Shown: positions 30,110 to 64,000 of the stretch, piece by piece
How the letters are laid out: the number at the start of each line of letters is the position of its first letter
Numbering within the stretch: the stretch's first letter is position 1
Translations under genes and position numbers: made by a program
Assembly (NCBI RefSeq): GCF_963921235.1
Contig: NW_026948113.1
Location: forward strand, 372,001-436,000
From: Mobula hypostoma
Taxonomy: Eukaryota
Length of the DNA: 64,000 nt
Reading direction: 5' to 3'
The notes under the pieces: model-generated
Seen by the model: the letters and a program-made list of their open reading frames with translations, nothing else
What the model was told of the DNA's origin: nothing
The model's database searches: none

Positions 30110-30390
30110 ACCCAGTGATTGGAGGAGTTTTGTGCTGAGCAGTTTTCCTCGGGCTGTTCGGAGGTTCCTGAAATCTCCCGCCGGATTTGTTGCAACACAA
30201 CAGGAAGTGGTTTGGCTCCGCTCCCTCCCGCGATCAGCCGACACTCCGCTGCCCACACAGTCATTTCTGTAGAAGGATTTTCAGTTACTGGCTGCACCTG
30301 CACCGACTGGCCGCGTCTGTGAATCTCACTCCACCCTCAGCACTTCACTGACTAACAATCAGGGTTCAGTCGATGCGAGGAGTTGTCGCA
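30110..30390 (+). promoter_or_regulatory. Candidate CpG-rich, TATA-less promoter/5'UTR of the class I-like gene
   Basis: Inverted CCAAT (GATTGG 30117-30122), GTTGCAAC at 30189-30196, ETS CAGGAAGTG at 30201-30209, and local CpG enrichment upstream of the ATG. Confidence 0.5.
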
Positions 30391-30466
30391 ATGGAGAGCT
30401 GGACCGGACCGGTATCGCTCCTTGTCACCGCGTTATCTCTCTGCTCTGTCGCGGGAGACCAGGCAG
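30391..30466 (+). CDS. MHC class I-like gene, exon 1 (signal peptide)
   Basis: GCAATGG Kozak; MESWTGPVSLLVTALSLCSVAGDQA; phase-1 donor G|GTGAGG, which joins exon 2 to give D-S-H-S-L. A weaker in-frame ATG lies at 30373. Confidence 0.8.
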
Positions 30467-31769
30467 GTGAGGCGAGGGTATGTGACGGCGTTGGTCGGGG
30501 GTTGTGTCGGGAAATTCACCTTTAAATCTTTTGGAGTTCCTGGCTGTTGCTCCATTAGGCGGGAAGACGAACTCATCGCACTCCTGTGTTCTCATTTCAC
30601 TCTTGTGAAATTTCTGAAGTCGATAAACTCGGGGCAAAATGTACCTTGAATATGTTTCAGCGGTGGGTAGTTTGGGGTCTATCGCCAGTTCCCAAAGAGG
30701 AAAGTCCCACAATCTTAACAGAGGCATCACATTAAAGCAATTAATCTGAGTTTAACTATCCCTTAACTGCCACGTTACGTCAGTCTGTTTCACAATACCA
30801 GAGAAATACTCCTGTTCTACCCATTCCTCTAGGGTCTGCACACACATAGCGGTCCGAGTGGCCTCTTTCTGTGCCTTATGTGTGAATGACTTCTCTGCTA
30901 ACAAAAACTAACTTGATTTCTCTCATTCCAAGTTCTGTCTCAGGCTCCCGAATCTGAAACATTCATTCTTTGTCTCTCAACCAATGCTACCCGAACTGTT
31001 GCAAGATTTCCACATTAGTTCTGTTTCTCTGTCCTCGCATGCTATCGGAACTTTCCGTCTTTAACTTGAGACATTAACAGTTCCTCTTTTCCCCAGATAC
31101 TGCCTGGCCTGTTGACTATTGTCAGAACATTTTCTTTCTATTTTCAAAGTGCATCAAGAGTTGGCTCTAAGTTTTGGTGATTAATGTGGTAATAGACTGG
31201 CAGAACATTGATGCATGTTATGTACAAGGACTTCTGGGAGGTTTTGTAAAATCGCCAGGTTAACACCGCTCATGCCAAATGATGCAGCGGGAAGTGGAGG
31301 TCGTTGCCAGTGGACATGAGTGGCGAGTTCATCAAAGCTCTGGTGTTGGGGTGGTTGGTCAGTATGTTTACACATGGCAGACTATGGGAGAGTGTTCTGT
31401 GTCTGCACCGGCTGCTTACAGAAAATACAATGAAAAAGGAAGCAGAAAAATAGAAGCAATAAATCACAAAGAACAATATTGCTCAGTTTCAGATACCTTA
31501 GGTAACAGGGAATTTAGAACGCTCAGAGAGGTCATGTTCAGTCACATTTATTGTCATATGCATAAGAATGGTTAGACAGATAAAATGAAAATCTCGCTTG
31601 CAGCAGCATTACAAGCAGGCATATTCAGGGCACACACAATGACAATTATGCAAAGTTTATGCAAGTCAATGAACAAAAAATTACTGCAGATTGAGACATC
31701 AGAGCAAAAAAAAAACTGAATCAGAGATGCCCGGTTGCAGTAGTACACGGGAAAGCAACAGTGGCCGTG

Positions 31770-34530
31770 CCTCTGGCACTGAGTCTGGCCCTGTGGCTCA
31801 GAGGGGTAGGGAACTGAAGAGGGTGGCAGCAGTAATAGGAGATTCTGTAGGCAGGGGGACAGATGGGTGATTCTGTGGATGCAAAAAGGAAAAACACAGA
31901 TGGTAGTTTGGCTCCCAGGTGCCAGGGTCTGAGATGTTTCTGGACATGTCCACAATATCCTGAAAAGGGAGGGTGAGCGGAGAGAAGCCGCATTACATGT
32001 TGGTATCAATGATATAGGAAGGAAAAGGGATGAGGTCCTGTAAAAAAGAATATACGGTGTTAGGAAGGAAGCTGAGGAGCAGGACCTCAAGAGTAGTAAT
32101 CTCAGGATTGCTGCCTGTTCTACATGACAGTGAGGATAGGAATAGAATGAGGTGGCAGATAAATGTGTGGCTGAAGAATTGGAGCAGGGGAGAGGGATTC
32201 AGATTTCTGGATAATAGGGCCCTCTTCTGGGGCAGGTGAAACCTGTACAAAAAGGGATGGGTTGCATTTGAATCCAAGGGGGACCAATATTCTTGTGGGC
32301 AAACTTACTGGAGCTGTTGGGAGTGGTTTAAATGAATATAGCAGGTGGATGGGAACCAGGATGATAGAGCTGAGGATGAGCCTGCAGGTTTACAAGAAGA
32401 TGATGGGTGTAACATGTATGTAAGGAAGGACAAGCCAATGATTGGGTACAATTGCAGACAGAGCAAAGAGTTAAATTGTACCACAGAGGCAAAATTCAAA
32501 AGGGCGAAGAATGCAGGACTGAAGGTGCTGTATTTGGAATAAGGTGGAAGAACTCGTGGTGCAATTAGAGATTTTTCTGTATGACATTGTGGGGATCATG
32601 GAGCTGTGGCTGAAAAAAGGCCAAATTTGGGACCTCAACATCAAGGGATATACATTGTAAGGAAAGAACAGGCAAAAAGGCATAGGCAGTGGTGTGGCTC
32701 TGTTGGTAAGAGATGGAATTACATCTTTAGAAAGAGGTGACATAGGGTCAGAGAATGCTTGTGCTTGAGTTTACTCAGGGAAAGGCTATCTTAGATTGAG
32801 TGTTGTGTATTGAATTGACTTTATTACTTACATACTTCGTAATCTTTACGTTCGTCTCCATCTAAATGTGCAATGTGTAATTTATAGTAATTTATAATAA
32901 ATAGTATGTACAACATAGAAATTCAGTTGTGCCAGCATGAATTAAGCAGTCTGATGGCCTAGTGAAAGAAGATGTCCTTCTTGGTCCTGGCTTTCATGTT
33001 GTGGTACCGTTTCCCAGATGGTAACAGCTGGAACATTTTGTGGTTGGGGTGACTCAGGTCCCTAATGATCCTTCAGGCCCTTTTTACACACCTGTCTTTG
33101 TAAATGTCCTGAATAGTGGGAAGTTCACATCTCCAGATATGCTGTAATAACCCAGATCTTATCAGGGCGCTTAACATAAAGGATTCCGTAGGAGACAGTG
33201 ATCAAAATATGATGGAATTCATGCAGCAATTTGAGAGGGAGAAGCATAACTCACATGCATCAGTATCGCAATGGAATAAAGGGAATGACAGAGGCATGAG
33301 AGCGGAGCTTGCCCAGGTGGATTGAAGGAGAATACTAGTGGGGATGACAGCAGAGATGGCTGAAGTTTCTGGGAATAGTTCACAAGGCGCAGGATAGATA
33401 TGTGCCACAGAGGAAGAAGTTCTCAAATGGCAGGGCTAGGCAACCTTGGCTGACAAAGAAAGTTAAGGACTGCATAAAAGTCAAGGAAAGGACATATAAG
33501 CTAACAAATGTGAGAGGGAAATTGGATGATTAGGAAGCTTTTAAAATCCAACAAAAAGTAGCTAAAAAGGCTATGAGAAGGGAAAAGATGAAATATGAGG
33601 ACTGACTAGCCAATAATATGAAGCAGGACACCAAAAGTTTTTTCAGTTGTAGAAAGAGTAAAAGGGAAGTGAGAGTTGATATTAGACCACTGGAATATGA
33701 TGCTAGTGAGGTAGTAATGCAGGACAAAGAATTGGCAAAGGAACTTAATGGGTACTTTGCATCTGTCTTCACTGTGGAAGACACTAGCAGTGTGCCAGAG
33801 GTCCGTGAGTGTCAGAGAGCAGGAGTGGGTGTTTTGCTGCTACAAAGGAAAAAGTGCTAGCCAACTTCAAGGGTCTTAAGGTGGATAAGTCACCTGAGCC
33901 AGATGGACTATGTCCCAGAATCTTGAGAGAGGTTGCTGAAGATATAACAGATACATTGGACATGCTCTTTCAAGAAAAGCCAGGAAATAATAATAAGACA
34001 CTAATCAAGCCACACTTAAAGCATTGTGAACAGTTTTGAGCCCCATATCTCAGAAAGGATGTGTTATCATTGGAGATAGCACAGAGGAGGTTCAGGAGGA
34101 TGATTCTGGGAATGAAGAGGTTAACGTATGAAGTGTTTGGCAGCTTTGGACCTGTACTCACTGGAGTTTAGCAAAATGTGGAGTGATCTCATTAAAACCT
34201 ACTGAATGTTGAAAGGACTTGTTGGGGTGGATGTGGAGAGGATGTTTCCAGTGGTGGAGTATCCAGAACTAGAGAGCACAGCCTCAAAATTGAGGGGTGG
34301 CCCTTTGGAACAGAAGTAAGCAGCAATTTGTTTTAGCCAGAGAGCTTTAAATCTGTGGAATGCTCTGCCACGGACTGCCAAGTTTGTGCATATATTTAAG
34401 GCGGAAGTTGATCGTGATATGACGAGGATGCAGTGTATGGGGTTGAGTGGGATCTGGATTCAGCCATGATGGAATGCGGAACAGTCTCGACGGGCTGAAT
34501 AGCCTAAATCTGCTCCTTTGTCTTATGGTC
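31770..34530 (+). mobile_element. CR1 LINE (ORF1 esterase and ORF2 remnants) in intron 1, interrupted by a Rex1-type 3' fragment (~32775-33135, -)
   Basis: VIGDS and LHVGINDI (SGNH-type ORF1), LKVDKSPEPDG, and a CR1 3' end. Confidence 0.85.
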
Positions 34531-34599
34531 TGAAAGGTGCAAGAGGCAGTCTGTAGTGTTTCATTGCTGTTGTAGGGTTAGGATTGTGCAGGTTGGTTC

Positions 34600-36880
34600 A
34601 ATAACTGATGTCTGTAGGAAAGTAGCTGTTGCTGAACCTGATGTTGTGGGATGTCAGTCTTCCGTCCCTCCTGCCCGACAGTAGCAGCAAGAAGACTACA
34701 TGATGCGAATGGTGGGAATCCTTGATGGTAGATGTTGCCTTCTTGAAGCAGTGCCTCCTGTAGATACTGCTAGTGTTGGAGTAGGATGTGCCCATGGTGG
34801 ATCAGGCTGTGTCCACCATTCTCTGCAGCTCTTGTATTCCTGTCTATTGTAGATTCTGTACCAGGTTTTGATGCAGCTAGTCAGTAATGTCAAGATTTTA
34901 AAGAAAGTGATTCTTCTGCAGAGTCAGTACAGTCCTCCTGGGTCCATCAAACACCCATTTACACTCGTCTAATCTTATTCTTCCCTCATTCGCATCAACA
35001 CCTTCCCAGATACCACCACTCACACACACCTCAGGGGTGATTTACAGCAGCCAATTAGCCCACCAATCCACACATCTCTGTGGTGTGTGAGGAAATCAGA
35101 GCAACCAGGGGAATCCTATGATATCTTTCTCTGAGATGACAACACCGGGCAGTGCAGAACTGGGATATGCCCTTCAGCCCAAGATGTTGTGCCAAATTAA
35201 TTAAACCGGTAACTAAATGCCTTACTAATCTTAACCCTTCTGCCAATGTCCATATCCTTCCATTCTCTGCAATTCATGGGCCTTTCTAAGTGTTTCTTAA
35301 ATACCTCTAATGTATTTGCCTCCACCACCAGCCCTCACAGCTGATTCCAGACACTGACCACTCTGTAAAATAAACATTGGCCTACAAATATCCTCTGAAC
35401 TTATTCCCTTTCACTTGAAATATATGCCCTCTACTGTTAGATATTTTGACCCTGGGATGCCCCCGTAATCTTATAAACGTCTATCAGATCTTCCCTCGGT
35501 CTCTGTCACTCCAGAGAACAACTCCTCCTCCGCATACACATCACCGAGGATCTCAAATGGTCTGAACATACCAGCTGTTTGGTGAAAAAGGCACAACAGC
35601 ATCTCCTTCACCTCAGACGGTTGAAGAAGTTTGGTGTGGCCCCCCTCCAAATTCTAAGAACTTTCTACAGGGGCACGAATGAGAGCATCATGACTGGCTG
35701 TATCACTGCCTGGTACAGGAACCGTACCTCCTTTAATCACAGGACTCGGCAGAGAGTGGTGACAACAGCCCTGCTCATCTGGAGATGTGATCATCCCACT
35801 ATTCAGGATATTTACAAGGACAGGTATGTAAAAAGGGTCTGAAGGATCATTGGAGACCTGAGTCAACCCAACCACAAACTGTTCCAGCTGCTATCATCTG
35901 GGAAATGGTACCGTAGCAAAAGAGCCAGGACCCACAGGCTCCAGGACAGTTTCTTCCATCAGACTGCTTAGTTCATGCTGATGCAACTGTATTTCTATGT
36001 TATATTGACTATCCTGTTGTACATAATATTTATTATAAATTACTACAATTCTACATTGCACACTTGAACGGAGACATAATGTAAAGATTTTTACTCCTCT
36101 TGTATATGAAGGATGTAAGTAATAAAGTCAATTCAATTCAATTCTTATGTCCTCTAATCCAGGAAGCATTCTGGAAAATCTCTTCTGCACTTGGATACCT
36201 GGAACAGTCTTGTTACCATAAGACCATAAGCCATAGGAGCAGAATTAGGCCATTTGGCCTATCAAGTCTGCTCTGCCATTTCATCCAATTTTACTCACAG
36301 CTCCAATCTGTTGCCTTCTCCCTGTATCCCTCCATGTCCTGACCAGTCAAGAATCTCTCAACCTCTGCCGTAAATATACATAACGGCTTGACCTCCACTG
36401 CTGCTAAGTTGCCTGTGGCAAAGGATCCCACAGATTCACCATTCTCTGGCTAAAAAAAATTCCTCCTCATCTCTGTTCTAAAAGGACAACCCTCTATTCT
36501 GAAACTGTGTCCTCTGGTCTTCGACTCTCCCACCATAGAAAACATCCTCTCCACATTCACTCTATAAAGGGCTTTCACAATTTGACAGGTTTCAAGTAGG
36601 TCCCACCTCATTCTTCTGAATTCTAGTGAATACAGACCCAGAATCAACAAATGCTCTTTATGTGACAAGCCTTTCAATCCAGGAATCATTTCCATGAACC
36701 TTCTTTGAATCCTGTCCAGTTTCAGCACATCTTTCCTAAGGGGCCCAGAATTGCTCACAATACTCCACATGAGGCCTCACCAGTGCTTCATGAAATCTGA
36801 ACATTACACATTTGCTTTTATATTCTAGTCCTCTTGAAGTGACTGCTAACTTTCAATCCCACTTGGGCTACATCACTCAG
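34600..36880. mobile_element. Intron-1 LINE fragments: Rex1-type (-34600-34880; +35520-36145 with (CAATT)n tail) and CR1 (-35130-35520; -36215-36880)
   Basis: ORFs 35579-35842 (KKAQQHLLHLRRLKKFG) and 36450-36770 (LYSLEFRRMRWDLLE). Confidence 0.75.
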
Positions 36881-37607
36881 CTTCTTTCCTTTGACATTGA
36901 TCACTGCATTGGTGCTGCTCCCCACATTCAGACAGAACTGGAAATTATTATTTTCCTTGCTCCCAATTCTTAGCCTATTCTCCTCCTCACACAAGGCATA
37001 TCTAAGTCTTCCCTACCCTCACTACATTCACAAATGTCCTTTCAACCTACAGACTCCAACAACTATCTTTACTTTTCATCCTCCCACTCTGCCTCTTGTG
37101 GGACTCCACTACCTCTTTTCTGTGCTCTTTCTCTGTCACCTTTGCTGCGATGATGAGAATTTCTACACTGGTGCCCCGGAAATGTCTTCTGCTTCTCCTT
37201 GAACCTTGGTTTCCTCTCTATCATGGTGGACTTATGTTCCAGTATGTTTGCCTCTGACTTAGAAACAACTCTATAGTGGGAGTTGGTGCTCCTGTTTCCC
37301 TGCTGCCATTGACCTCCTTTGTGCTGGGGTTTGGGTTGTTTTGTTGGATTGGCTTCAGTGAGTATCTGCTTAGGATTTTGTTAACGGCCAGAGCAGTGAA
37401 GCAAGTTTTCATAGTGTTGGTTGCTCGTGTTTGGGGAGCTAATAAAGGGGGGTGGGAGTGCTGCCTGATCCAGTAGGATGTCTGTTTGGATGTGTATTAA
37501 TCCATTCAAGTGGCGAGTATACCATCAAACTCCCGAGTTGTGCGTTATAAATTGTGAGCATCCTTTGTTGTGTTCTGACACTCCTCTCTCTCTGTCCTTT
37601 TACTCAG

Positions 37608-37856
37608 ACTCACACAGCTTGATGTATTACTACTTCCAATCCATCAACATTCCTGAAATGCCAGCTTTCTTCAGGATTGGGATGCTCGATGACTTGCAGA
37701 TAGACTACTACGACAGCACACTCCGTGAAGTAGAAGTCAAGCACCAGTTGATCGCAGATGGCTTATCGACCAACTACCGGAAAGAACAGAAAGAAATAAC
37801 CGACCAGTTTTATAATTTCATCTTGACAAATCTGAAGCAATTTGCCTTATTCGTTA
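37608..37856 (+). CDS. MHC class I-like gene, exon 2 (alpha1 domain)
   Basis: Polypyrimidine-CAG acceptor and GTGAGT donor; 249 bp, phase 1/1. Translation DSHSLMYYYFQSINIPEMPAFFRIGMLDDLQIDYYDS...NYRKEQ... follows the class I alpha1 pattern. Confidence 0.93.
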
Positions 37857-38319
37857 GTGAGTGTCTTTGATCTCCACTACCCTTTGAGTATCACAGTGAC
37901 TTGCATATTGCCAATACTTTGATGTTCTATTAGATCTGATTATGTTGTATCCAGTTTGAAGTCCTTCACTCTTTCAAATCTCTCAAATCTCCATTCTGCT
38001 CTCTACCTTTCTTAACTCCAATTACAAGAATTCCATCCTAATCATCTGGGTAAGTTCTGACCCTTCAAAATAAACTGATTATCCAGTCCTCATTCCCCAC
38101 GGACCTCTTCAGAGAAACAGTGAAAATCAAACCCACTGTCCATACAGGCTTTGCCTGGCTCAAACCCTAATCCTAAGCCTACTCCCCAACTCCAGACTTG
38201 GGGATGCTTCAGTCTAGGATGGTTTGGCACTAAGTCGTCTATGGTTCTTATCTAGTCACCTGCCACAATGACGCTTTCCAGATCGAATTCGGTGAGGGGA
38301 CTCCATGCATTAGACCTAG

Positions 38320-39680
38320 AACGCTACAACACAGGAAAAGGCCCTTTGGCCCAAAATGTCCTGCTGAACTAATTGTATTAATAATCAAATGTCAAACTAA
38401 TCTCATCCTTTCTGCCTACACAATGTCCATGTCCTGCTCGCCTAAGCTTCTTGAACACCCTCTTTGTATCTGCTACTACCACAACCCCTGGAAGCACAAC
38501 TTAGGAACATGCCATTCTGTAATAGTCTTACCCTGCACATCTCCATTGAACATACCCCCTTTTCCATCCCCTCTTGTATTAGACATTTCAACTGAGGGAA
38601 AAATAATACCAGCTGTCAACTTTAAAACAGAGAAAACAGCCCAAATTGGTCAAATCACTTGTTATAGCACATGCCATCCAATCCAGGCAGCATCTGGTAA
38701 GCATCTTCTGCACCTACTCCAAAGCCTCACCGTCACAGAGTGACCAGAACTGCTGTGTTGCACACTCTGTGCTTATTGACACTGAATACAAACATGTTGC
38801 TTTCACTATTCTCCGCTGTAACTCTCTGCAGTGGACATGGTTCAGCGCAGACTGTACAGTGCAGTCTCTCACTGTGAGCCCCTGCTCTGACCCACATGTT
38901 GACAGAGTCCTTCAATGTGCCCCCTGCTTTGTATGTACAGTACTATGCACTGCACAGTGTTTCAATGTGATCTCTGTACTGTGCACTCTGCATAAGTTCA
39001 AGCTCGAGTTTATTTCTGATCGTAGGCTGACATACACAGGGTACAAATGCCATAAAATCACTGTTTTACAGCAGCATCATGGTATATTACAGGACATGTT
39101 AGCATGGAGTCAATTTTAAATAAATATGCACAACCAGCACATGTGCAAAGTAGTAGTAGTCGTAGTTGTAGTCGTAGTAATCATACTTTATTGATCCCGG
39201 GGGAAATTGGTTAATTGGAAATTGGAAAAAGGTATACAACAAAATTAATTTAACAATATTTGTGCAAGATTAAGAGCCAAGAATATAATCTAGGGTCTCG
39301 TTAAGGCTTTTCTGGTTGGTTAAAGAACCTGGTGGTATTGGGCATGGAGCTCTTGTTGGAGCCTGAGGTGTTAGTCCTTTGGCCTCTGTCCCTCCTTCCT
39401 AGTGGTAGCATCAAGAAGAGAGTATGTCCTGGATGATAGGGAGGGTGTGGCTCCTGGTGATGGATGTTGTCTTCCTGGGAAGTTGCCTTCCGCAGATGTC
39501 CTCAATTGTGGGGAGAGCTGTGCCTGTGATGGGCCTGGTTGAGCCCAGCACCCCCGCAGCCTTTTGTCTTTCAGGGCTTTGGAGTTTATCTACCAGCTGT
39601 GATGTAACCAATCCGAATGCTTTTCACTGCACGTTTGAAAACATTGCCATTCGTTAATGACAAATTGAATCTCTTTAAAC
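38320..39680 (-). mobile_element. Intron-2 LINE fragments (CR1 ~38320-38760; Rex1-type ~39145-39680 with (CTA)n tail)
   Basis: 3'-end signatures shared with other copies in the window. Confidence 0.65.
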
Positions 39681-39944
39681 TTTCCCCTCCCACCTTGCCG
39701 TGTAGATAGTTGCTCACATTGATTACTGATTCCACCAGACCCTGTGATCTGTGCCACACCCTGACAAATGTTCTATATAGGACACTTCACCCCATGCTCT
39801 CGGCCTTAACTGTACACAGTCGCTCACCGTGACCCACTACTTGGTGCACCTCTTAGTCACGTAGCATTTACGTATTTAGCAGACCATTATCTAGTATTGG
39901 AAGCTTCAGCCATTAATGTTAATTAATCTGTTGATAATTTGCAG

Positions 39945-40205
39945 GCTTCAGCTACATACAAGCACTCTGGGGCTGCGCACAATCTGGAGATACGGTCAAC
40001 GCGATTCTAAAAGCCAACTTCCAGGATTTCGGAGTGGTCAGCTGTGATATCAACACAGGGAAATGCACTGGCACTGGTTTCCTAGCAATGTTCAATGATC
40101 AATTGAGCCAATTCAGATTCACTGACGTGACTGCATTGAAGAGTAACTGCACTTGGTATTTGCAAAGGGCTGTTCAGCTTGGAAGAGAAGCATTGGAAAG
40201 GCAAG
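39945..40205 (+). CDS. MHC class I-like gene, exon 3 (alpha2 domain)
   Basis: TTTGCAG acceptor; 261 bp, phase 1/1. Translation SFSYIQALWGCAQSG...VSCDINTGKCTG...KSNCTWYLQRAVQLGREALERQ contains the canonical Cys pair. The donor is AG|GCAAGT. Confidence 0.9.
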
Positions 40206-40224
40206 GCAAGTGGAACATCCTGCG

Positions 40225-40525
40225 ATGGAGAGGGAACTCCCAATTCAGCAACATAAAGGATACCTCAGTCTGAGACGATTATGGGGCTCTGAGACCGAGA
40301 TGGTGTGGGCTGTCATGATTCAGGATACTGAAGGATTTGATGATCTAACAAATTGATGGTGTTCCCAATCTGGGACAGAGAGGGATCTCCTGATCTGGAC
40401 AGTAAGGAAGCTTCCAATCAGAGATGCAGAGGGATCTCCTCATACGGGAAAGAGAGGGAGCTCACAAAACAAAATGGTTAGGGGGTTCCCAATCTGCAGT
40501 AATGAGGGATCTCCTAATTTGAAAC
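40225..40525. repeat. Degenerate ~25-bp-period tandem array (~12 units) at the start of intron 3
   Basis: GGGATCTCC-like cores at about 40232, 40257, 40283, 40307, 40332, 40358, 40382, 40406, 40431, 40456, 40481 and 40506. Confidence 0.7.
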
Positions 40526-40964
40526 AGTGAGTTGATTGGAGTGTACGGCCTACAGGCCTGGAGGTGGACTGTAAGCCCATGATTGGCTCCATTGCTTCTC
40601 TCTGACTGAGGCGTTGAGCAAGTTTGAAGTGGACGAGGCCAAGTGCGGAGGCCAGGCTGGTGTTTGGCGCCATCTGCTGCGTTTGGCTGGTATTCCTCTC
40701 CCTTTTACTAGCTGCTGTTGGAGGAAAGTGCAGGAGGCTTGGGTTCCACATTGCAGGGATTGATCGGTGAGGCTCGTGGTTGTGACTCTTTTTGGAGGAC
40801 TTTAGGGTTCATGTATTTCTGGATTCTGGTTACCCTTTGTTTCCTGTTTCTAAGTGGTTTGATCAGGGTGCATCAGTGCGCACTGGGCGTTTCAGCGAAG
40901 ACTGAATCTGCGGCCTGCATTTGGCTAGTGGCAAGGCACTGAACTAAACTGAGTACATCTGGAG

Positions 40965-43760
40965 TTGATAAAACCATAAGATATAGAAGCAGAATGGGGC
41001 CATTTGGCCCATTGAGTCTGCTCCGCCATTTCATCATGCTGGTCCATTATCCCTCACAGCTCCAATGTCCTGCCTTCTCCCTGTATCGCTTCATGTCGTG
41101 ACTATAAAGAATCTATCAATCTCTGCTTTAAATATAGTAAAGATGTGGCCTCCACAGCTGCCAAGTTGCCTGTAACAATGAATTCTACAGATGTACTGCT
41201 ATCTGGCTAAAGAAATATTTCCTGATCTCCATTTTAAAAGGATGCCCCTCTACTCTGCGTGTCACAGAAATTTACTATTGCTGATTAAACAAGGACACAG
41301 ACCCCAGTATTCTGTTTAATTACTTACTTACATGACCATGGAGAGCCCACTAAAAGACTCTGCTAAAGTGAGCACAAGCATGGTCTTTTATTCCTTAAAA
41401 TACATGCAATTCAGCAGTTTTCAGGAGTCAAGAGTTCCTGCATAGACCTTATTGACAAGATTCAGGATGCTTCCATACCTTACACAAACTTAGATACACT
41501 ACACTCAGCCCCCTTCTTCCAGATCGTTAATGTATATCATGAACAGTTGCAGCCCCAGCACAGACCCCAATGGCACACCACTCACCACTGACTGCCAACC
41601 AGAGAAACACCCAGGTATCCCAACTCTCTTCTTTCTATTAGTCAACCAATCTTCTATCCATGCTAATACATTAGCCCCAACTCTGTTGTTCTATTTTGGT
41701 AAATTATCACCAAAGCCTTTACTGTAACTTCTGCCATTTCTTTCAGTACCCTGGGACTTATCTATCTTCCGGCCCACACGATTGCTCAGCACTACCTCTT
41801 TAGTGATAGCTATTGTATCAGGTTCTCGCCTCCCATTGCGTCCATAACATCTGTCTTTGGCATGTTAGACGTGTCCTCCACCTCCACTGTGAAGACCGAC
41901 ACAACATAGATCTAAAGCCTCTGCCATTTCCTCATTCCCCAATATTAATTCCCCTTCTCGTCTTCCAAGGGACTGATGTTCACTTAAGCCACCCTTTTCT
42001 GCTTTATATAATTATAACAACTTTTACGATCTGTTTTTATATTTTGTGCTGGTTTATTTTCATAGTCTATCTTCCCTTCCTTCACTGCTCGCTCAGTGGT
42101 TCTATGTTGCTTTTTAAAGTTTTCTCAATCTTGCATTTTCCCACTGCTCTTGGCAAATTTGTACAAACGAGCTTTTAGTTTGATGCTTTCTTTCATTTTC
42201 CACCCTTGCTTACTTACTTGCTCCCCACTTTTATCTGGAATACATCTTCTTCTATTGTTTGTACATACCCCGCGCCTTCTGAATTGCTTCCAGAAACTCC
42301 ATCCATTTATGCTCTGCCACCATCCCTTTCAGTGTTATTTTCAAATCAATTTTGACCAGCTCCTCTCTCATGCCTCTGTAATTACCTTTACTCCACTGTA
42401 ATCCAGATACATCTGACTTTAGCTCTCCTTCTCAAATTGGATGGTGAATTCTATTATATTATGATCACTTAACCCTAAGAGTACCTTTACCATAAGCTCT
42501 CTAAACAATTCTGGTTCATTGCACAACACTCAATCCAGAATAGCTGATACCCCAGTGGACTCAACCATGAGCCGCTTTAAAAAGCCATCCCGCAAGCAAT
42601 TCCACTTCTTGGGATCCAGCACAAAACTGATTTTCCAATCTACTTGCATATTGAAATTCCCCACAACTATTGTAACATTGACCTTTTGGCATGCATTTTC
42701 TATCTCCCATTGTAATTTGTAGACCACATCCTTACTACAGTTTAGGGGTCTGTATATAACTCTGATCAAGGTCTTTTTACCCTTGAAGTTCCTTAGCTCT
42801 ACCCACAATGATTCAATATCTTCTGACCCGACATCACCTTTCTAATGATTTGATTTCATTTTTTACCAACAGAGCAATGCCTCCACATTTGCCTACCCTT
42901 TTGATACAATGTGTATCCTTGAATGCTATTACCACACAAAATCATACATGCCAATCTGTAACTGTGCTACAAGTTCATCGACCTTATTCCAGAAGAGAAC
43001 CCCTGCCCTCTCCACTAATTCCTTGGCCACACATACAGCTGCCAAATCATACTATTCTTACCTTCACTGGCACTTGGGACAGGCAGAAATCCAGTGATTA
43101 CTACCCTGGAGGTCCTGTTTTACAGCTTTCTACACAGCTCCCTCAAATCTCTCTTCAGGACCTCCTCAACTTATCGACCCATCTCATTGGTGCCGAGATG
43201 CACCAAGATTTCTGGCTGCTCACCCTCCCTCCTGAAAATGCAATGGACCTGATCCGAGACATCCGTGATCCAGGCAATTGGGAGGCAACATACCACCTGG
43301 GTGTCTCCATCGTGCCCACAGAATCTTGTCTCTGTTCTTCTGCCTGTGGAATTTCCCATCAACACTGAAGTCTTCTTCACCTCTCTGCTCTTCTGAGCCA
43401 CAGCATCAGATTCAGTGCCAGAGAGGAGGTCACTGTGGTTACCCCCGGTCGATTGTCCCCTTCAACAGTATCTAAAGTGGTACATTTATATTGAGGGGTA
43501 TGACCACAGGTGTACTCTGCACTGGCTGTGCATTTCCCCTCCTTCTCCTGACAGTCACTTGTCTACCAATCTCCTGCAACCAAGGGTGACTACCTCCCTG
43601 TAGCTCCTATCTATCACTTCCTCTTTCTCCCATATGAAGCTAAGGTCAGTGAGCTGCAGCTCCAGTTCCTTAACACATTCTCCGAGGAGCCGCAGTTTGA
43701 CGCACCTGGTGCAGATGTGTTTATCCGAGAGACTGGATATCTCCCAGAATACTCACATCT
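40965..43760 (-). mobile_element. CR1 LINE with internal deletions in intron 3
   Basis: ORF 43171-43401 (VVCCLPIAWITDVS...VHLGTNEMG, ORF1 esterase), ORF 42530-42808 (WVELRN.KGKKTLI.VIYRP, APE) and a CR1 3' end near 40970. Confidence 0.85.
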
Positions 43761-44462
43761 CACACACAGTATGAGACACTGCCCCTGGAGTCATTCTCAC
43801 TACACTATGATGCCCTAACAGATGAGGAATGGACAATTAAGAACAAAAATACCCCTGCTTGGATGTTTGATATCCTCTGTGTTGCTAGTTCACTTTTTGC
43901 TGTTTGTGCAATCTGTTCCCTCCCTGCATCTTGCGTGTTTGATGTTTTCTTTGAACGGGTTCCTTGGTGCCTCTTTGTTCCTTCGCTGCATCGGAGGATA
44001 AACCTCAGAGTTGTATTCTGTATAAACAATTTGGTAATTAATCTACTTTGAATCTTTGAGTGAGGGCGCTCCCAAATGGAGACATTGACTGATCTCCCGG
44101 TCTGGGGCAGTGAGGGACCTTCTGATCAATACTGCTGTGCTGAGGGCATTCTCCATCTTGCAGTTTGAGGATGATCTGAATTTGGGATATTGCACGACTG
44201 CTGGACTGGGAATAGTGCCTGTGACCTTGATCTGGACCTGTCCGATGAATGAAAGTAATCTCTGTCTGTAGTCTGCATGAGCTTGGGCTGGGGAGGCTGA
44301 TTTCAGATTAGATGGTGAGTGTAATAGTGAGGCCGATCACATTCTGAGGCAGTGAAGGATGTGAGAGTAATCCCAACATTGAACACTGTAACTTCAGTCT
44401 GTAACGGTAAGGTAACATCAGCCTGAGTTGAGGAGGTGACATAATTTTTGATTCTTCCCCAG

Positions 44463-44738
44463 TTGCTCCAGAGACTCAGGTGTTGACAAGGAGGCCGACA
44501 GCTACTGAAGGCAAGAGTCTGTCGTGCATCATCACTCCCTTCTACCCCTGTGCTATCAATGCCACTTGGCTGAAGAATGGGCAGGTTGTCTCTGAGGGCT
44601 ACAACGTGACTGTGCTACCAAACTACAATGATACATACTGGATGGAACTAGTCATTGAGCTGCAGGGCAACGACCCGAACATCTATACTTGTCATGTCGA
44701 GCACAGCAGCCTGCCAAAGGCCCTGATGGTGAAGGGAG
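44463..44738 (+). CDS. MHC class I-like gene, exon 4 (alpha3 Ig C1 domain)
   Basis: TTCTTCCCCAG acceptor and G|GTAGGT donor; 276 bp, phase 1/1. C1-set motifs LSC...FYP...W.KNG...LPN.N.TY...YTCHVEHSSL. Confidence 0.95.
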
Positions 44739-47031
44739 GTAGGTCATTGTACGGTACAGGATTTGCTTCATTCTGCCTGTGGTGGTTCATGGACTCATGC
44801 AGCAGAGAAGGGGGCTCTTCAGTCTACCTGATTCATGCAAATCCAATTCATGCAAACCCTCTAGTTCTCAAAAACACTTGGCCCGTCCCCTTCTTTAACT
44901 CGATGATTCAACTGCTCATCTAGATACGTCTTGAAAATTATAGAGGTCTCTGCCTCCACCATCTCCTCAGGCAGTCCATTCCCAACTCCAAAAACCCCCT
45001 TGATGAAAGTATGCTTCTGTAGATTCCCTATAAACCTCTTAGTCATTATCTTAAACCTACGTCGAGTTATAGGCACCTTTACTATGGGGAAAAGTTTACT
45101 ACTGTTCAAGCAAACACATGAAGTGGAAGCATAAACTGCAGCAAGTAAAACCTGTAGCATTCTTCAGAATCAGAATCAGGTTTACTGTTGCTGGCATCTG
45201 TTGTGAAATTTGTTAAGTTAGCAGCAGAACAATGCAATGCATGATAATATAGAAAAAATATAGAACAAGTAAGTAAATCAACTACAATAATTATATATAT
45301 GTATATTGAACAGATTTTAAAATAGTGCAAAAACAGAAATAACATATATTTTAAAAAGTTCTTCCAACATTTTCTATGTATTTCCTATCTACACCCCTAA
45401 TAATTCTGTATAACTCCATCAGGTCCACCCTCAGTCTCCTCCCATCTAAAGAAAACAAAACCAGTGTATCTATTCTCTCTTCTCATTCCATCTGAGCCAC
45501 ATTCCGGCGAATCTCCTCCGCACTCTGTCCAATGCAATCACATCTCTCCTCTGCTCTGGTGACCAGAACTGTAAACAATACTCAGAATGTAGCCTCACCG
45601 ATGTTTTATAAAGCTGTACCATAATTCCCATGCCCTTGTATTCCATGCACTGATAACTGGTATCTCATACACTTCCTTCACCACCCTATTTACCTCTTTG
45701 AAAGACCTAATCAAGCATCTCCACCATAAAGCTGCACCATAAGTTCCCTTCTCTTGAATTCTATGCCCTGATCAGTGAAATCCAGCATCCTGTAGGCTAT
45801 CTTCACCACCTTGTCCTCTACTTTGAATGACTTGCTCAAGTAGCCCCACTCTTTCTCACACACCTCTGAAAATTTCTTAATTCCAAGAACATATCCCATT
45901 TCCATTTTGGAAGTTATTATTTACCGTGCTCTTTTATCACTTGAATTAAATCTGTTCCTTCTGCTCACCAGATGTTACAGAAGCAGTTGAGCTGTTGGTC
46001 AAAGAAATATAGTAAGAACTCAACAGAAATAACAACTAAGAAGCAATTGGGACTGTGGGGAAGACCTGACTGTCAAGTGGTCACTGCCTGGCTGTTGGGT
46101 GTTTGATTGTCATAGATTCGTAGAATTCTGCAACAGAGAAACAGACCCTTCAGCCCAACATGCCTTTGTCAATCAAGATTTCCATTCAAAGAAGTCCCAT
46201 TTATCCTGGCCCATATCTCCCTAAACCCTTTAGACCCATTTACTGGTGGATGTATCTTTTAAAAGATGTTAACTTGTCTGCCTCAACCACTTCTTCTGGC
46301 ACCCATAAATTGACCATCATGTTGCCACTCAGGTTCCTGTTACATCTTTTCTCTCTTAACTTAAACCTATACCATCAGGAGCCCTGAAAAATTATTGTGC
46401 ATTCTCTCTATGCCCCTCAAAATTTTATATACTTCTCTCTATAGCTCAGCCCCCTACACTCCAGGGAAAATAATCCCAGCCTATCTTGTCTCTCATTATT
46501 TCTCAAGCATTCCATTCCTGGCACCATCCTTGTGAATCTCCTCTGCATCCTTTCCATCCTAATGACATCCTTCCTTCCTCAAAGCACCTTCTATTTTCCT
46601 ATCCTGCAATATATAAGATACTACCCACCCAGGACTACCCTCCCCCACACCCCCCCCCCCGCCCCCCGCTTCTCCAGCTCCCATCAGGCACAGATACAAA
46701 AGCCTGACAGAATGTACTACTATGATCAATGAACACTTCTGTCTTTCTCCTGTGAGAAAATTGAGTGGACCCAAACATAGTAAGATAGGCATCTGACCTC
46801 ACAATCTAACTTTTAATGGTCTTGCATCCTATTGCCAGCTAGCACCACACATCCTCTGTAAAAGTAATACATTACTCTGCATTCTGTTATTGTTTTCCCT
46901 TGTACAAACTTAATATCCTGATGTAATGATTTGTATGGACGGAATGCAAAACATGTATTTCCACTGTACCTGGTAACTGGTGACAATAATAAAATAATTT
47001 ATACATTTACCGATCTTTACTTGGTGAACAG

Positions 47032-47108
47032 GAGTTGGTGAGCCCCATGGTGCAGGTCCTATGTTGGGGCTGATGACTGTGTTTGCGATAATCTTTGGAA
47101 TGATGTAG
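47032..47108 (+). CDS. MHC class I-like gene, exon 5 coding part (C-terminal hydrophobic segment ending in TAG)
   Basis: Phase-1 acceptor; GVGEPHGAGPMLGLMTVFAIIFGMM*. The exon continues to donor GTGGGT (after 47144) or GTAAAC (after 47148). It is colinear with the paralog at 61963-61851. An alternative in-frame acceptor lies at 47054-47055. Confidence 0.82.
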
Positions 47109-47234
47109 AGGTGCAGCAAGGAGAGAACCAAGACATCACTGGAGGTGGGTAAACGTACAGATGCCTTTGTTAAACCTGCTTGCTGTGACAGTATTAGACT
47201 GTACATTCAACCTCCTCTCTTTTCTCCTTTGCAG

Positions 47235-48375
47235 ATCAGCATTTGGCTCTAACTCAAGCACAGTTCTGAACACAGGGTGCAGCTTCAAACAGGCTTTTTT
47301 GATGAGTGACCGCACACCTCAGCAAGCTTAGAATCAGAATCAGATTTAATATCACTGGCATTGATTGTGAGATTTGTTAACTTTACAGCAGCAGTACAAT
47401 GAAATTTACAATAAATAAAAAACTGAGTTATATAAAGTATATTTATGGCTGTTAAGTTAAAATAAGTAGTGCAAAATAACAGAAATAAAAGAAGTAGGAA
47501 GTAGTGTTCATGGGTTCAATGTCCATTGATAAATCGGCTGGCAGAGGGGAAGAAGCTGTGCCTTCAGGCTTCTGCGCCTCCTTCCTGATGGCTCCAGTGG
47601 GAAGAGGGCATGTCCTGGGTGGTGGTGGATGTAGCCTTCCTAAGGCATCGCTCCTTGAAGATATTTTGGATACTATGGAGGCTGGTACCCCGATAGATCT
47701 GACTAATTTTACAAGTTTCTGCAATTTGTTTCAAACTTGTCCAGTAGTCCCTCATAAGAGATGCTGATGCAGCCAGTCAAAATGTTCTCCATCGTACATT
47801 TGTAGAAGTTTTTGAGTGTTTTAGTTGACCTACAAAATCAACACAACCTCCCAATAAAATACAGCCGCTGTCTTGGCTTCTTTATAACTGCATCCTCAGA
47901 GATGTTGACACCTAGGAACTTGAAATTGCTCATTTTCTCCACTTCTGATCCCTCTATGAAGATAGGTTTAGCGTTACATCCACTGTGGGAACTTGCCTGC
48001 TGAATCTTCTGCTGCTTTGAACAGCTCCCGTTTAGCTATGTCTTAAATTTTTTCTTACATCTGAGAAAGATTTCAAGTTTCAGTCTTGCAGTGCACTGAT
48101 GTTTGACACTCATTTGTAAGGTCCCTCTCCAGTCCTAATTCCACCACAAACGCCATATGTCAAATCATTGCTCTGAAGTATGAATGCCTGTTTTGAACAC
48201 TGGACAGCCAAGAGTAATTCTTTTCTTCATTGGAGATTGGCAGGGTCCAACATTTAGTTTATAATATGAGCAGAAACTCTGGAATGCTGTGGCAATTTGG
48301 TGAATGAGAGAGTACAAAATTTGAGGATTATACAATGGAATAAATATGGTTACTTTCCCTGTTGTATTGTTGGGC
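47235..48375 (+). other. Terminal (3'UTR) exon of the class I-like gene
   Basis: Strong acceptor CCTCCTCTCTTTTCTCCTTTGCAG. Homology to the paralog 3' end runs on both sides of a LINE insert. AATAAA at 48349-48354. Confidence 0.65.
47332..47967 (-). mobile_element. Rex1-type LINE 3' fragment inserted in the 3'UTR
   Basis: (ATTCTG)n tail, TTAG on both sides (47328-47331, 47968-47971), and absent from the paralog. Confidence 0.85.
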
Positions 48376-49609
48376 AAACTCGTATTGTTTTCTCTGGAGC
48401 ATTAGAGGTTTTGGGCAGACCTGATAGAGAATTATATAATCCTGAGAGACATATAGAGATGAGATTGTCAGTTTCTTCCACAGACTAGAAACGTCAAATT
48501 TTAATTGCACCAATTACATTGTAAAAAACTTACTTCTGACATCCCTCTATAGTTTCTTCTAATCATCTTCAAATTATTCTCCCTCATATTAGCCATTTCC
48601 ACCATGGGAAAACTCTGGCTATCCACTCAATTTATTTTTCTTATGCCTCTTACCGTCTTTATATCTCTGTGAAGTTACCTCTCATCCTTCTTTGCTCCAA
48701 AGAGAAAAGCCCTAGCTCACTGAACCTATCTTCATCAGACATACTCACTAATCCAGGCAGCATCCTGGTAAATCTCCACTGCACCCTATCTAAAGCTTCT
48801 ACATCCTTCCTATATGAAGTGGCCAAAAATGAACACAATAATGAAATTATATTCCATGATCAGCCTCTAAAGATGCAGACATGCGATACTGCAACATTTT
48901 CCCAAGACTGAGTCTCTAAACATGCGCTCTCCAGGGGGACAATGCTCCCAAGCATTGCACCTTCGACACTATAGCAGCCCCTCAGCAATGGCCCTTCTTC
49001 AGACAATCCACTTCTTAAAGTGAATCAGAACCTTAGTTACAACATTGGAGACTGGCACAACTTCTCCAGTTGCACAGTGCTCCCCTTGCACTGTCTCTCA
49101 ACAGAACAGTTCTCCCTCAATATCTCTCTTTCAGTCCTTCCTTAAAATTAATCTTTACAGTAGCGCAGTCTCTCAGTATCTCCCTTTAACTGTCTCAGTG
49201 CACACCTCTACTGTTACCGCGCTTCCTTGGAATGTCCTGTTACCGTGGAGTACTTGCTTTGTATTACTCTTTCAAATGGTACAGTGTTTCCTCAGTCCTG
49301 CCCCCCTGACAGGGTAATATTGCCAGCTGACAATGCAACACTCCCTCAACACTGGACTCTGCGTGCAGCATTCTTAGAACTGAGCCCAGCAGTGCAGCAC
49401 TCCGGGTGTTGCCCTCTGTCCGTACATTGATGACTCAGCACAGAAGATGCTGCATTCCATACTATTGTTCCTCCTATGTTGCACAGCTTCACGACAAAGA
49501 TACCACACGGATCATGAATGAATTCCGTTCCTGAGAAGTGCACATGAAGAGGGTCACAGACCTGCTGTGAGAGCATTCATCAGGAAGTTGAACCCACAAG
49601 AGAGCATCC

Positions 49610-59734: not shown

Positions 59735-60375
59735 TGTGAACAGTAAGTTGGTTAAGAAGGCAATGGAATGTTTGCTCTTATTAGTGGAGGCAATGAGTTC
59801 AAAAATCAGGAGGTTATGCTGCAACTTTATAAAACTCTGGTTCGGCCACATCTGGCATATGGCATATAGTTCTGGTAGCCCCATTATATAAAGGATGTCG
59901 GGACTTTGGAGAGGGTGCAGAAGAGCTTCACCAGGATGTTGCCTGGTTTAGAGGGCGTGTGTTAACATGAGATGCTGGATAAACTTGGGTTGCTTTCTCT
60001 GGAGCGTCAGAGGATGAAGGGAGATCTGACTGAGGTTTACATGATTGTGTGAGGCATATATAGAGTGGGCAGAGAGTATCCATTCCCAAGGTTGAAATGT
60101 CTAATACCAGAGGGCATGCATTGAAGGTGAGATAGGGTAGGTTCAAGGGGGACGTGAGAGGGGTTCTTTGACTGAGAGTTGTGGATGCCTGGCATGGTGG
60201 TAGAGGCAAACACATTAGCAGCAGTTAAGAGACGTTTGGATAGGCACATCGATATAAAGAGGATGGAGGGAAATGGACAATGTAGGTAGGACCGATTAGT
60301 GTTTGGGTGTTTTTCAGTTGCTTTTTAATTGGTTTGGTACAAATTATGAGTCAAATGGCCTGTTCCTGTGCTGTA
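59735..60375 (+). mobile_element. CR1 LINE 3' fragment
   Basis: CR1 RT C-terminal and 3'UTR signatures. Confidence 0.75.
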
Positions 60376-60529
60376 CATTCCAATGTTCAATCTCCCTCCA
60401 GACATAATACGTTCCAACCACTACCACCCTCTGCGTTCTTTGGGCAAGCCAATTCCGAATCCATGCAGACAGGTTTCTATGGATCCCATGCCTCATGATG
60501 TCTGAATGTCTACCAAGATATTTCTGGAT

Positions 60530-60653
60530 GAGAAGACCATGACCCGTCACAGGAAGAATGTGCAAACTCCACACGGACCATGCTGGAGATCAGGATTGAA
60601 CCCGTGTCGCTGGAGTAGAGAGGCTTTGCTCTACTTGCTGTGCTATAGTGCCT
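60530..60653 (-). mobile_element. tRNA-derived SINE head
   Basis: The reverse complement begins GGCACTATAGCACAGCAAGTAGAGC and contains a B-box-like GGGTTCAATCC. Confidence 0.6.
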
Positions 60654-61194
60654 TCAGATAACAAGCTGAGAGTCCTCCTCGACCCAACCAGTAATATCGA
60701 CAAGGCAATAGCAAAGGCTGACACTTCTGTCATAATAGCAAATAGTACACATGATCCAGGGAAATAACCGCATTAGACCTTAGAACATAAAACATTTCAG
60801 CACTGCAATAAGCCCTTCAGCCTATAATGACTGTGCTATTCATGATGCCTAATTAAACTAAATATCTGTCTGCGCATGGTCCCTATCCCTTCATTCCCAC
60901 AGGTCCATGTGTCTGTCTCAATGCCTTTTAATGACCAGTATGATGTTTGTTTGCACCATCACGCCTGGTAATGCATTCCAGGCACTTATCAGACTTAGCA
61001 TATTAAAAAAGAACAACTCCTTTAAACTAAAGTGATGCCCTCTAATATTTGACATTTCTAGGCTGGGAAAAAGACTGACTACCCTCTCTCTGGTGTTGCT
61101 GAGGATTATATAAATGCCCATCAGGCTTACCATGCCTCCAACACTCCAGAGGAAAGAACACGGATCTGTCCAAACCGCCAGCAGGGATATTGGG

Positions 61195-61765
61195 CATATT
61201 TACACCACGCTATGAATCTTAGATTAATTTTTAACTCTACGTCAACCCAAATTGCACCAATATACAGGGGTTTCTGTTCCTATTTTAAAGAAAATGTTGG
61301 ACCCTCCCAATCTCATATTAAGGGAAGAATTCATCTTAGGTATCCGGAGTTCACAACAGGAATTCACTCTTCCAGTCAGGTCCTTCCAAATGCCCAGTAA
61401 ATCTTTCACTGCTTTATCCCACCAACTTGCCTTGGCAGTAGTTCCTCACACCAATGGTCTGATATACAATATTGCATTGGCGTTAGGGTTGGGAAGAGGT
61501 ATTCAGGTCAAGTAGGGCTTTACAAATGAGAAGTTGAAACTTCAACACACCACAACACTGAAACCTGATCGCTGAGTGAGATGTAGGAAAAAGTTATAAC
61601 ATTGCAAAACAGACGAGCTGTAAAGTGGCAGAAGATTCAGCTAAGCATTTCCCGCACTGGAGCCAACACTAAGCTTGCTTAGGTGTTGAACCATTAATCA
61701 CAAAACCAGGCAGAGGATCCAGCTTGTGTTCAGAGCTGAGCTTGAGATTTGGGCCAAACACCCAC
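61195..61765 (-). other. Terminal (3'UTR) exon of a paralogous class I-like gene
   Basis: Acceptor TTCTCACTTTTCTTTTGCAG (AG at 61767-61766). Colinear homology to 47235-47331 plus 47968-48330. Confidence 0.7.
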
Positions 61766-61886
61766 CTGCAAAAGAAAAGTGAGAAGAGATTGATTGAGCA
61801 ATACTGTGACAGCAAGCAGGATTAGTGAAAGGACCTGCGTGTTTACCCACCTGTACTAAAGCCTTGACTCTCTCCTTGCTGCTCCT

Positions 61887-61963
61887 CTACACCACTTTAA
61901 CCATCATCGTAAGTGTCGCCATCAGCCCCAGCAAAGGACCTGCACCACGAGGCTCCCCGGCTC
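61887..61963 (-). CDS. Paralogous class I-like gene, C-terminal exon coding part
   Basis: GAGEPRGAGPLLGLMATLTMMVKVV*. 56/77 nt identical, ungapped, to 47032-47108, with the same acceptor context, same TAG position and same GTGGGTAAAC donor. Confidence 0.85.
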
Positions 61964-63249
61964 CTACTCACCAAGTAAAGATTGGTAAATTGGTAATATT
62001 TTAAATTGTTGTCACATGTACTGAGGTACACTGAAAAATCTTTGTACTGCATGCCATCCACAGATAATTGCATTACAATTGCACATTGAGATAATACAAG
62101 GGGCAAAAATAGCAAAATGGAAAGCAACTTGTAACAGTTACAGAGGAAGTAGAGAGCAGGCACACAGTAAGGAGCAAGGGCCACAGTATGGTTGATCGTG
62201 ACATCAAAGGTTAAACGTGCCGTACTATGGAACTCTACAATACTGTTATAACAGCAAAATAGAAGCTGTCCTTGATCATCAGTGTGTGCTTTCAGGCTTT
62301 CGTACCTTCTGCTCAGCAGAAGGTGGGGGAAGAAGAAAGAATTTATGGTGCAGGCGATGTCTTATTCACTGGAGCTTAGGAGAATGGGGTGATCTTATGC
62401 ATATTAACGAAGGAAGGAAGTCATTAAACTGGAAAAGGTGTACAAAATATTCTCAAGAACGTTGCCAAGAAAGGTACACTTGAATTAGAAGGGGAGGTAG
62501 CATAGCTTGGCATTATTTTCCCTTGAATGTAAGAGGTTGAGATATATAGAAAAACGTATAAAATCATAAAGAGCATAGAGAGGATGAATGCACAATCTTT
62601 TTCCCAGGATTTGGGCATCAGGAACTTTAGGACAAAGGTTTAAGGTGATTAGTGAAAAATTATAATAGAAACCGGAGGGCCAACATTCTCAAGCAGAAGT
62701 TGTCAGCACAGGGAAGGAGATGCAAGAGAAAGTGGTTTTGGCAGCTACATTAACAACATTTTAAACAAAAAAAAAAAAATCACTGGAACCAGTAGGTAGA
62801 CAGGAAATGTTTGGTAGTATATGGGCCATGGTAGGAATCTTGGTTGGCATAGACCAGTTGTGCAGATGGCCTGTTTTTGTTCCGTAAGGGTCTATGACTT
62901 CTCTAAATGTCAGTCATTTCTCAGCCAGGCAGTGGCCATTGGACAGTCAGACCTTGACCCACAGGCCCAATCACTTCTCAGTTGTTTCTTTCCTTGAGCA
63001 TCTATTATGTTTCTTTGGCCCATAACTCATAATTGCTTCTTACGACTGAACACAAACAAGAGAAAATCTGAAGATACTGTAACCTTGTAAATAATAACTT
63101 TCAGCAAGGACATGGGACATGTTTTTTGAAGAAAGAAACTTTCAGAGGCGTGTAAGAGAAGAATGGAGCTACTTGATCAGCTCTTTCAAAGTGGTAGACA
63201 CGGTGGTAAAGAAAGCCTACAGGATTTATTAATCAGGGCATAAAATATA

Positions 63250-63535
63250 ATTTGTTTTATTTAGAGAAACAGTACAGACCAGGCCCTGCTGGACCAATGC
63301 ACTACACCATCCAACAACCCACCTATTTAACACCTGTCTCATCATAGGACAATTTACAATGACGAATTAACCCACTAGCTGGTACGTCTGTGGACTATGG
63401 GAGGAAGCCGGAGCAGCCAGAGGATATCCAGGCAGTTCATGGAGAGAACGTGCAAACTCTTACAGACGGCATTGGAACTGAACTCTGAACTACACTACCA
63501 TGGTGTTCTGTGAAGCTCTGGTACAGCTTTACTGA
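63250..63535 (-). mobile_element. SINE insertion (V-SINE/HE1-like body) specific to the paralog intron
   Basis: GGGAGGAAGCCGGAGCA...GAGAACGTGCAAACTC core; it interrupts the CR1 remnant shared with gene 1 intron 4. Confidence 0.6.
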
Positions 63536-64000
63536 GGAGATGCATCATCGGGTCAGTCAAAGAGGTAGGTATAGTGATGAACAAAGTGTACAGGATACGA
63601 GTGTTCATTAATATGGGCACAGAATACAAAACCAAGGAAATTAGGGTACAGCTTTACAAAACATTACCTAGGCTACATCCCAAGTACTTGATGCATTTGT
63701 GGTCACCAGCCCAGAGGAACAATTTGATTGCATGGGACAGAGTACACAGGATATTCACCAGGATTTTATTGGGATGCAATGTTTCAGTGAAGAGGCCAGG
63801 TTTGATTTCCCTGAACGGGAGGAGGCTGAGAGAGGAGCTGATGGCATTATACAAAATTGTTAGGGGCATTGAAAGGAAAGATGTACAAAATGCTGAAAGA
63901 GCAAAGCTTTTTTTTACTGCAGTAGTTTGTATACTGCTCCCACTTAATTTCTTTTATAAAACAGCAGCAAACTTTTCCCCATAGCAGAGGTGCTTATTAC

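Follow-up and report, generated by a model that had tools for sequence, protein, structure and literature searches.

Two class I-like genes in tail-to-tail orientation

The window, a 64,000-nt stretch of the Mobula hypostoma genome, carries an MHC class I-like gene on its plus strand (gene 1; CDS span 30373..47108) and, on the minus strand at its right edge, a partner of that gene's 3' part (copy 2; 61030..64000). The exons of gene 1 (30373-30466, 37608-37856, 39945-40205, 44463-44738, and 47032-47108) translate exactly to the RefSeq protein XP_062894931.1 (P0155), which is assigned to an unplaced scaffold of 516,489 bp in assembly GCA_963921235.1. Its alpha3 domain matches PF07654 at 2e-13, with alpha1 and alpha2 (PF00129) on separate phase-1 exons; its C-terminal exon (47032..47108) encodes VGEPHGAGPMLGLMTVFAIIFGMM, and it has a 3'UTR intron at 47145-47234 and the poly(A) hexamer AATAAA at 48339-48344, all on the plus strand. 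The alpha2 exon ends at a GC rather than a GT donor (40205-40211, caag/gcaagt); since splicing at this site still yields the RefSeq protein without any difference, the following intron is of the GC-AG type.

The segment at 61030..64000, read on the minus strand, appears to contain the last intron, the last exon, and the 3'UTR of a second gene of the UFA lineage of MHC class Ib, lying tail to tail with gene 1. We call gene 1 A-type and copy 2 B-type, after the two sublineages described below. A first-pass annotation of the window had proposed that the reverse complement of the right edge is colinear with about 45065-48330, with position 64000 corresponding to about 45065 in gene 1. BLASTN of 61195-64000 against the whole window, leaving the self match aside, gave six colinear minus-strand blocks on 45066-48300 (65-79% identity, E = 1e-9 to 8e-62), and a single short stray match outside the colinear blocks. 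At higher sensitivity the match ran from 45066-48515 to 64000-61030, reaching 165 nt farther left than 61195, so that the proposed colinearity holds over an even longer stretch and position 64000 falls on 45066. Block-wise global alignment with MAFFT gave 69.3% identity between copy 2 and gene 1 (K2P 0.40) over 2,502 aligned bases; the C-terminal exon is 72.7% identical over its 77 nt, as compared to 68.4% in the intron, the exon being very short for such a comparison.

The colinearity extends over five blocks on gene 1 positions 45066-48515, and it is broken by insertions private to either copy, which make up the gaps between the blocks. Those private to gene 1 (45151-45359 and 47332-47967) both belong to a repeat family found also at 13548-14301; they lie in the last intron and the 3'UTR of gene 1, copy 2 has none, and both entered gene 1 after the A/B duplication. 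The stretches private to copy 2 are 63247-63511 and 61373-61477. Within the former, contig depth over a stretch of 32-37 nt (63341-63377) is 76-547 in each of the four RNA-like runs, and in that bin only; one run has the stretch at the tip of a 4.2-kb contig. This is probably the conserved core of an abundant SINE-like dispersed repeat that is carried in many transcripts. The single Rfam match over 60000-64000, to the archaeal snoRNA sR24, falls in a copy 2-private insertion and scores below threshold, and we took it as chance. Also in the intron, the two copies have in common an old LINE-like ORF2-tail remnant (63512..63900, plus strand; 70% identity to its partner at 45360-45746), whose other matches in the window are short and weak. 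In both copies it runs antisense to the gene it lies in, between stretches of unique colinear sequence, and thus predates the duplication. Shared CR1/LINE remnants had been part of the initial proposal; the shared remnant is there, while the CR1 label went unconfirmed, as Pfam returned no match for the ORFs of the remnant.

Anatomy and transcription of copy 2

Within the window, copy 2 begins with the 3' portion of the intron between alpha3 and the C-terminal exon (61964..64000, minus strand, as are all features of copy 2 that follow), which ends in the acceptor ag at 61965-61964. The C-terminal exon (61887..61963) completes a split Gly codon and continues with 24 codons (AGEPRGAGPLLGLMATLTMMVKVV) to a TAG placed as in gene 1, giving a hydrophobic ending without a tail. 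The first part of the 3'UTR, 36 nt up to the donor (61851..61886), is followed by a GT..AG intron of 85 nt (61766..61850), the partner of the 3'UTR intron of gene 1, and by a terminal 3'UTR exon (60298..61765) whose end is approximate and lies 0.73 kb beyond the duplicated block. The 3'UTR, the short intron, and the C-terminal exon that the first-pass annotation had recognized by colinearity are thus found in both copies, with splice sites and stop codon kept, and the exon can be placed at 61963-61887.

Copy 2 is still transcribed and spliced. Of the words sampled from 61030-62000, up to 56% occur in small RNA-like runs, and four such runs mapped on 60401-64000 give unbroken contig cover from 60401 to 61965 and nearly none in the intron to the right, where depth is zero beyond ~61965 apart from stray pieces. 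The 85-nt intron is spliced out in contigs of the runs X9, X10, and X12 from organism A (joint 61759>61845, or cut 61765>61851 when shifted by 6 nt), and a similar joint occurs in X14 from organism B. The runs are Logan contigs, which can be chimeric and give neither strand nor level; that they derive from RNA is a guess, which the splice joints support. In X10 and X12, 62-77 nt of the window at 61497-61573 are replaced by 4-19 other letters, an indel that distinguishes the window copy from a second B copy or an allele expressed in the same species.

At 61199..61204, the position of the ancestral poly(A) hexamer, copy 2 has TGTAAA where gene 1 has AATAAA, and contigs read through it. Contiguous contigs from the four runs cover the terminal exon, and all four of the contigs that reach 60401 stop 103 nt farther, near 60298, some 26 nt downstream of an ATTAAA at 60324..60329 that is probably the poly(A) signal now in use. 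From these contig ends and this hexamer we conclude that copy 2 reads through the dead ancestral signal into a 3'UTR of ~1.5 kb. It seems, then, that the ancestral AATAAA is gone from copy 2 and that the transcript of this copy ends ~0.9 kb farther downstream, at the ATTAAA. The extended 3'UTR includes, just upstream of the ATTAAA, an ORF fragment that resembles LINE reverse transcriptase (60344-60574, minus strand), for which Pfam gave no match.

Connection to upstream exons

A contig from run X9, which matches the window with 0-1 mismatches (1 in 256 nt), joins the C-terminal exon of copy 2 to the sequence HNLTPFVSMP+G, the end of an alpha1 domain. Among family members, HNLTPFVSMP occurs only in XP_062894932.1 (P0164), and we therefore assign the window exon to the gene of that protein. 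XP_062894932.1 is annotated on the scaffold of gene 1 under the next accession after XP_062894931.1, with a CDS span of 6,957 bp, and its model comprises alpha1, ~30 residues of alpha2, and alpha3. The proposal of an inverted class I-like paralog entering from the right edge is therefore borne out by both a transcript and a neighboring RefSeq model. It had been made with the proviso that a lack of alpha exons upstream on the minus strand would reduce the match to a partial duplicate or pseudogene fragment; the alpha1 end in X9 shows that such exons exist, and copy 2 is thus a gene and not a fragment. The exact place of its alpha exons beyond 64000 we infer: colinearity with gene 1 would put the alpha3 exon near 64.3-64.6 kb, in line with the 0.3-0.6 kb past the edge predicted in the first-pass annotation, and the CDS span of 6,957 bp is compatible with such a place.

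Part of the match, the remnant at 63512-63900, is LINE-like, as would be expected if all of it came from a duplicated 3' piece or from transposable elements common to both places, and not from a gene. We see next to no room for this explanation: colinearity extends across 3 kb, most of it unique sequence, the neighboring gene is annotated, and the transcript that ties the match to an alpha1 exon refutes it.

The junction of alpha1 and tail in X9 keeps the frame while leaving out alpha2 and alpha3; it was seen in one contig, at a depth of 8. Two further contigs show what precedes the C-terminal exon in other copies. The one from X14 (organism B) reads ...SLPGALMVQG/GAGEP in frame, identical to the intact protein P0151 of M. 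birostris. The one from X12 (organism A) differs from the window at 12 positions and reads ...SSLLGH-stop with one G fewer than X14; this is also how P0169 ends, the second B model of M. hypostoma, on a 199-Mb chromosome, and the frameshifted contig probably derives from that second copy.

Assignment to the UFA lineage

A gene of the UFA lineage would be expected to map to the MHC-Ib cluster together with UDA and UEA; the scaffold of gene 1 is unplaced. For gene 1, the best PDB match was 8gm8_A (5e-12 for alpha1, 4e-24 for alpha3, 2.9e-59 for the whole chain), and the B relatives gave the same best match at 2.5e-62 over alpha1-alpha3; the next match after it, at 1e-28 to 1e-31, was some 30 orders of magnitude behind. 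8gm8_A is a solved shark chain and the nearest structure for the UFA lineage; its PDB title does not mention UFA and the name rests on reviews, and a literature search for text tying 8gm8 to the name UFA found none. Assignment to UFA is based on this nearest structure and on grouping with shark homologs in the tree described below. Behind 8gm8_A, gene 1 matched 9ch4_A, MR1 (2.4e-26), CD1c (1.3e-23), and HLA-A chimeras (~1e-22). RefSeq automatically names such models "CD1c-like", "CD1d-like", or "MR1-like", and a non-classical class I architecture is common to these genes and mammalian CD1 and MR1. In sequence similarity, CD1c and MR1 do not surpass the classical class I chains, and CD1 is not nearer than the remaining class I families.

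UFA has been described as a CD1-like MHC class Ib lineage of elasmobranchs (PMC10751288, PMC12562908), and its hydrophobic, lipid-binding groove has been reported as a personal communication only (PMC12562908). Gene 1 has the exon plan of class I with phase-1 junctions, in common with elasmobranch UFA, and while the literature describes UFA as single- or low-copy, here we find clusters of 4-7 models and two old sublineages in rays.

Two sublineages and their age

A maximum-likelihood tree of 21 proteins, rooted on the shark relatives P0013 and P0032, resolves a B clade (support 100/99) of Hemitrygon, M. birostris, and two M. hypostoma sequences; its sister group (91/85) consists of the sawfish together with all A genes, and Narcine and two sharks fall outside both. 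The B clade joins manta and stingray genes apart from the A genes, so that the A/B split predates the divergence of eagle and devil rays from stingrays; it possibly predates the sawfish divergence too. Complete B proteins of 315 aa are found in M. birostris (XP_072113434.1, P0151), Hemitrygon akajei (XP_072885753.1, P0002), and Hypanus sabinus (XP_059826634.1, P0175), and the B sublineage is intact in these three rays; P0151 and P0002 carry PF00129. The C-terminal exon of copy 2 agrees with P0151 at 24 of 25 residues and with the gene 1 exon at 12 of 25 (48%), and P0164 and P0151 share 90% identity across 198 aa. Set against P0151, the gene 1 exons are 57% identical for alpha1, 48% for alpha2, and 85% for alpha3.

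Accession numbers suggest that A and B genes are interleaved in clusters in three other rays, as judged from RefSeq numbering and not from coordinates. The M. birostris run from ...434 to ...441 goes B, A, A, A, truncated B, A; the Hypanus sabinus run from ...634 to ...639 starts with B and continues with A genes; and in Hemitrygon akajei, B and most A models share one nearby run (XP_0728857xx-8xx). The old duplicated gene pair or cluster that had been read from the window is thus supported by the B clade and these interleaved runs. In the M. hypostoma assembly, the A/B pair is present twice, as P0172 and P0169 on the 199-Mb chromosome and as P0155 and P0164 on the 516-kb scaffold. The A models P0155 and P0172 are 95% identical and the B models P0164 and P0169 are 90% identical (differences of 4.7% versus 10%), which hints that the scaffold may be a paralogous copy and not a haplotig of the chromosomal pair; the lower figure for B also fits relaxed constraint on that type.

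Decay or function of copy 2

Although it groups with the complete B proteins in one clade, the M. hypostoma model P0164 appears damaged. Compared to the 315-aa proteins it lacks a leader and retains no more than the first third of alpha2; Tyr replaces the first Cys of the alpha3 disulfide pair, a residue that 21 relatives all keep; and the protein ends in LLGY-stop. These lesions are read from an automatic RefSeq model, not from the DNA. P0164 still carries PF07654 (MHC class I alpha3, Ig C1-set), without the disulfide pair owing to the Cys-to-Tyr change. The premature stop where alpha3 ends keeps the reading frame from reaching the C-terminal exon that lies in the window. In both copies, the predicted short hydrophobic C-terminus with no cytoplasmic tail would resemble that of mouse Qa-2, a GPI-anchored class Ib protein, but in copy 2 the frame that contains alpha3 stops before the tail exon.

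The second M. hypostoma B model, P0169, has the same Tyr and the same early stop, and it keeps the leader, alpha1, alpha2, and alpha3. The truncated M. birostris model P0003 ends ...PGH as well. The stop at the alpha3 end may thus have arisen before the two Mobula species separated, and the Cys would have been lost afterwards. Copy 2 shows what characterizes a transcribed unprocessed pseudogene, namely an intron that is kept and spliced, transcription, and lesions relative to intact orthologs (the lesions again from the RefSeq model), and it is most likely a transcribed, decaying pseudogene; the loss of function, like the age of copy 2 in years, is something we infer.

Some observations would also be compatible with activity. 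The isoform that runs from alpha1 to the tail is in frame, and some product is possible; and the C-terminal exon, one residue off the intact manta protein, would fit continuing constraint too. If copy 2 were functional in M. hypostoma, the odd model would be due to an error of assembly or annotation, or to one defective allele, and the product would end in the GPI-type tail encoded by 61963-61887. The intact exon, acceptor, and stop, the intact and spliced 3'UTR intron, the near-identity of the exon to P0151, and the intact orthologs in three other rays would all be in keeping with this. We nonetheless consider it unlikely: two independent M. hypostoma models share both the Cys-to-Tyr change and the stop before the tail, an RNA contig of X12 has a 1-nt deletion, P0003 is truncated in the same manner, and the B copies differ from each other by about twice as much as the A copies.

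A truncated B gene might instead have been kept as a novelty, giving either a soluble, anchor-less class I chain that ends at alpha3 or a small product of alpha1 plus tail. The former could be made from a model such as P0169, with its leader and all three alpha domains, and a stop found in models of both Mobula species may predate their split; the latter could be made from the in-frame junction. Set against these, an Ig-domain Cys that is invariant in 21 relatives is lost, the window copy is missing its leader and most of alpha2, a chain of alpha1 alone could not adopt the class I fold, and the junction was found in only one contig of depth 8. To a new product of either kind we give very little credence.

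We thus favor, with good though not complete confidence, the reading of copy 2 as the 3' end of a B-type UFA paralog that lies tail to tail with gene 1, dates from an old split, corresponds to XP_062894932.1, and is transcribed and decaying. On this reading, the B sublineage parted from A before devil rays and stingrays diverged; in M. hypostoma the gene is still transcribed and spliced, the ancestral poly(A) signal is lost and the end has moved ~0.9 kb downstream; and the coding part is damaged by the stop at the end of alpha3, the Cys-to-Tyr change, and, in the model, the absence of the leader and most of alpha2.

UFA clusters in rays

The gene itself had already been annotated in RefSeq and the lineage had a name. 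New here are the transcript that connects the window exon to alpha1, the loss of the poly(A) signal together with the lengthened 3'UTR, the in-frame isoform with skipped exons, and the dating of the A/B split. Copy 2 opens no new question, but it adds to a picture in which the CD1-like class I lineage of rays forms small clusters with inverted and interleaved paralogs. A B sublineage that is intact in manta and stingrays and probably decaying in a devil ray bears on the early diversification and turnover of lipid-presenting class I genes.

A broader reading, which we offer tentatively and do not ourselves hold to be probable, is that rays expanded a supposedly single- or low-copy UFA gene into clusters with two ancient sublineages whose ligand-binding domains differ strongly (the 57% and 48% identity of alpha1 and alpha2 noted above, as against 85% in alpha3). 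B would be conserved as one gene per cluster and A would multiply, in a division of labor like that of CD1a-e, with B now being lost in M. hypostoma.

One further M. birostris model is of B type: P0168 (XP_072115050.1, 581 aa) carries the full alpha1-alpha2-alpha3 set twice in tandem ahead of its tail, and may be a read-through model of two neighboring B genes.
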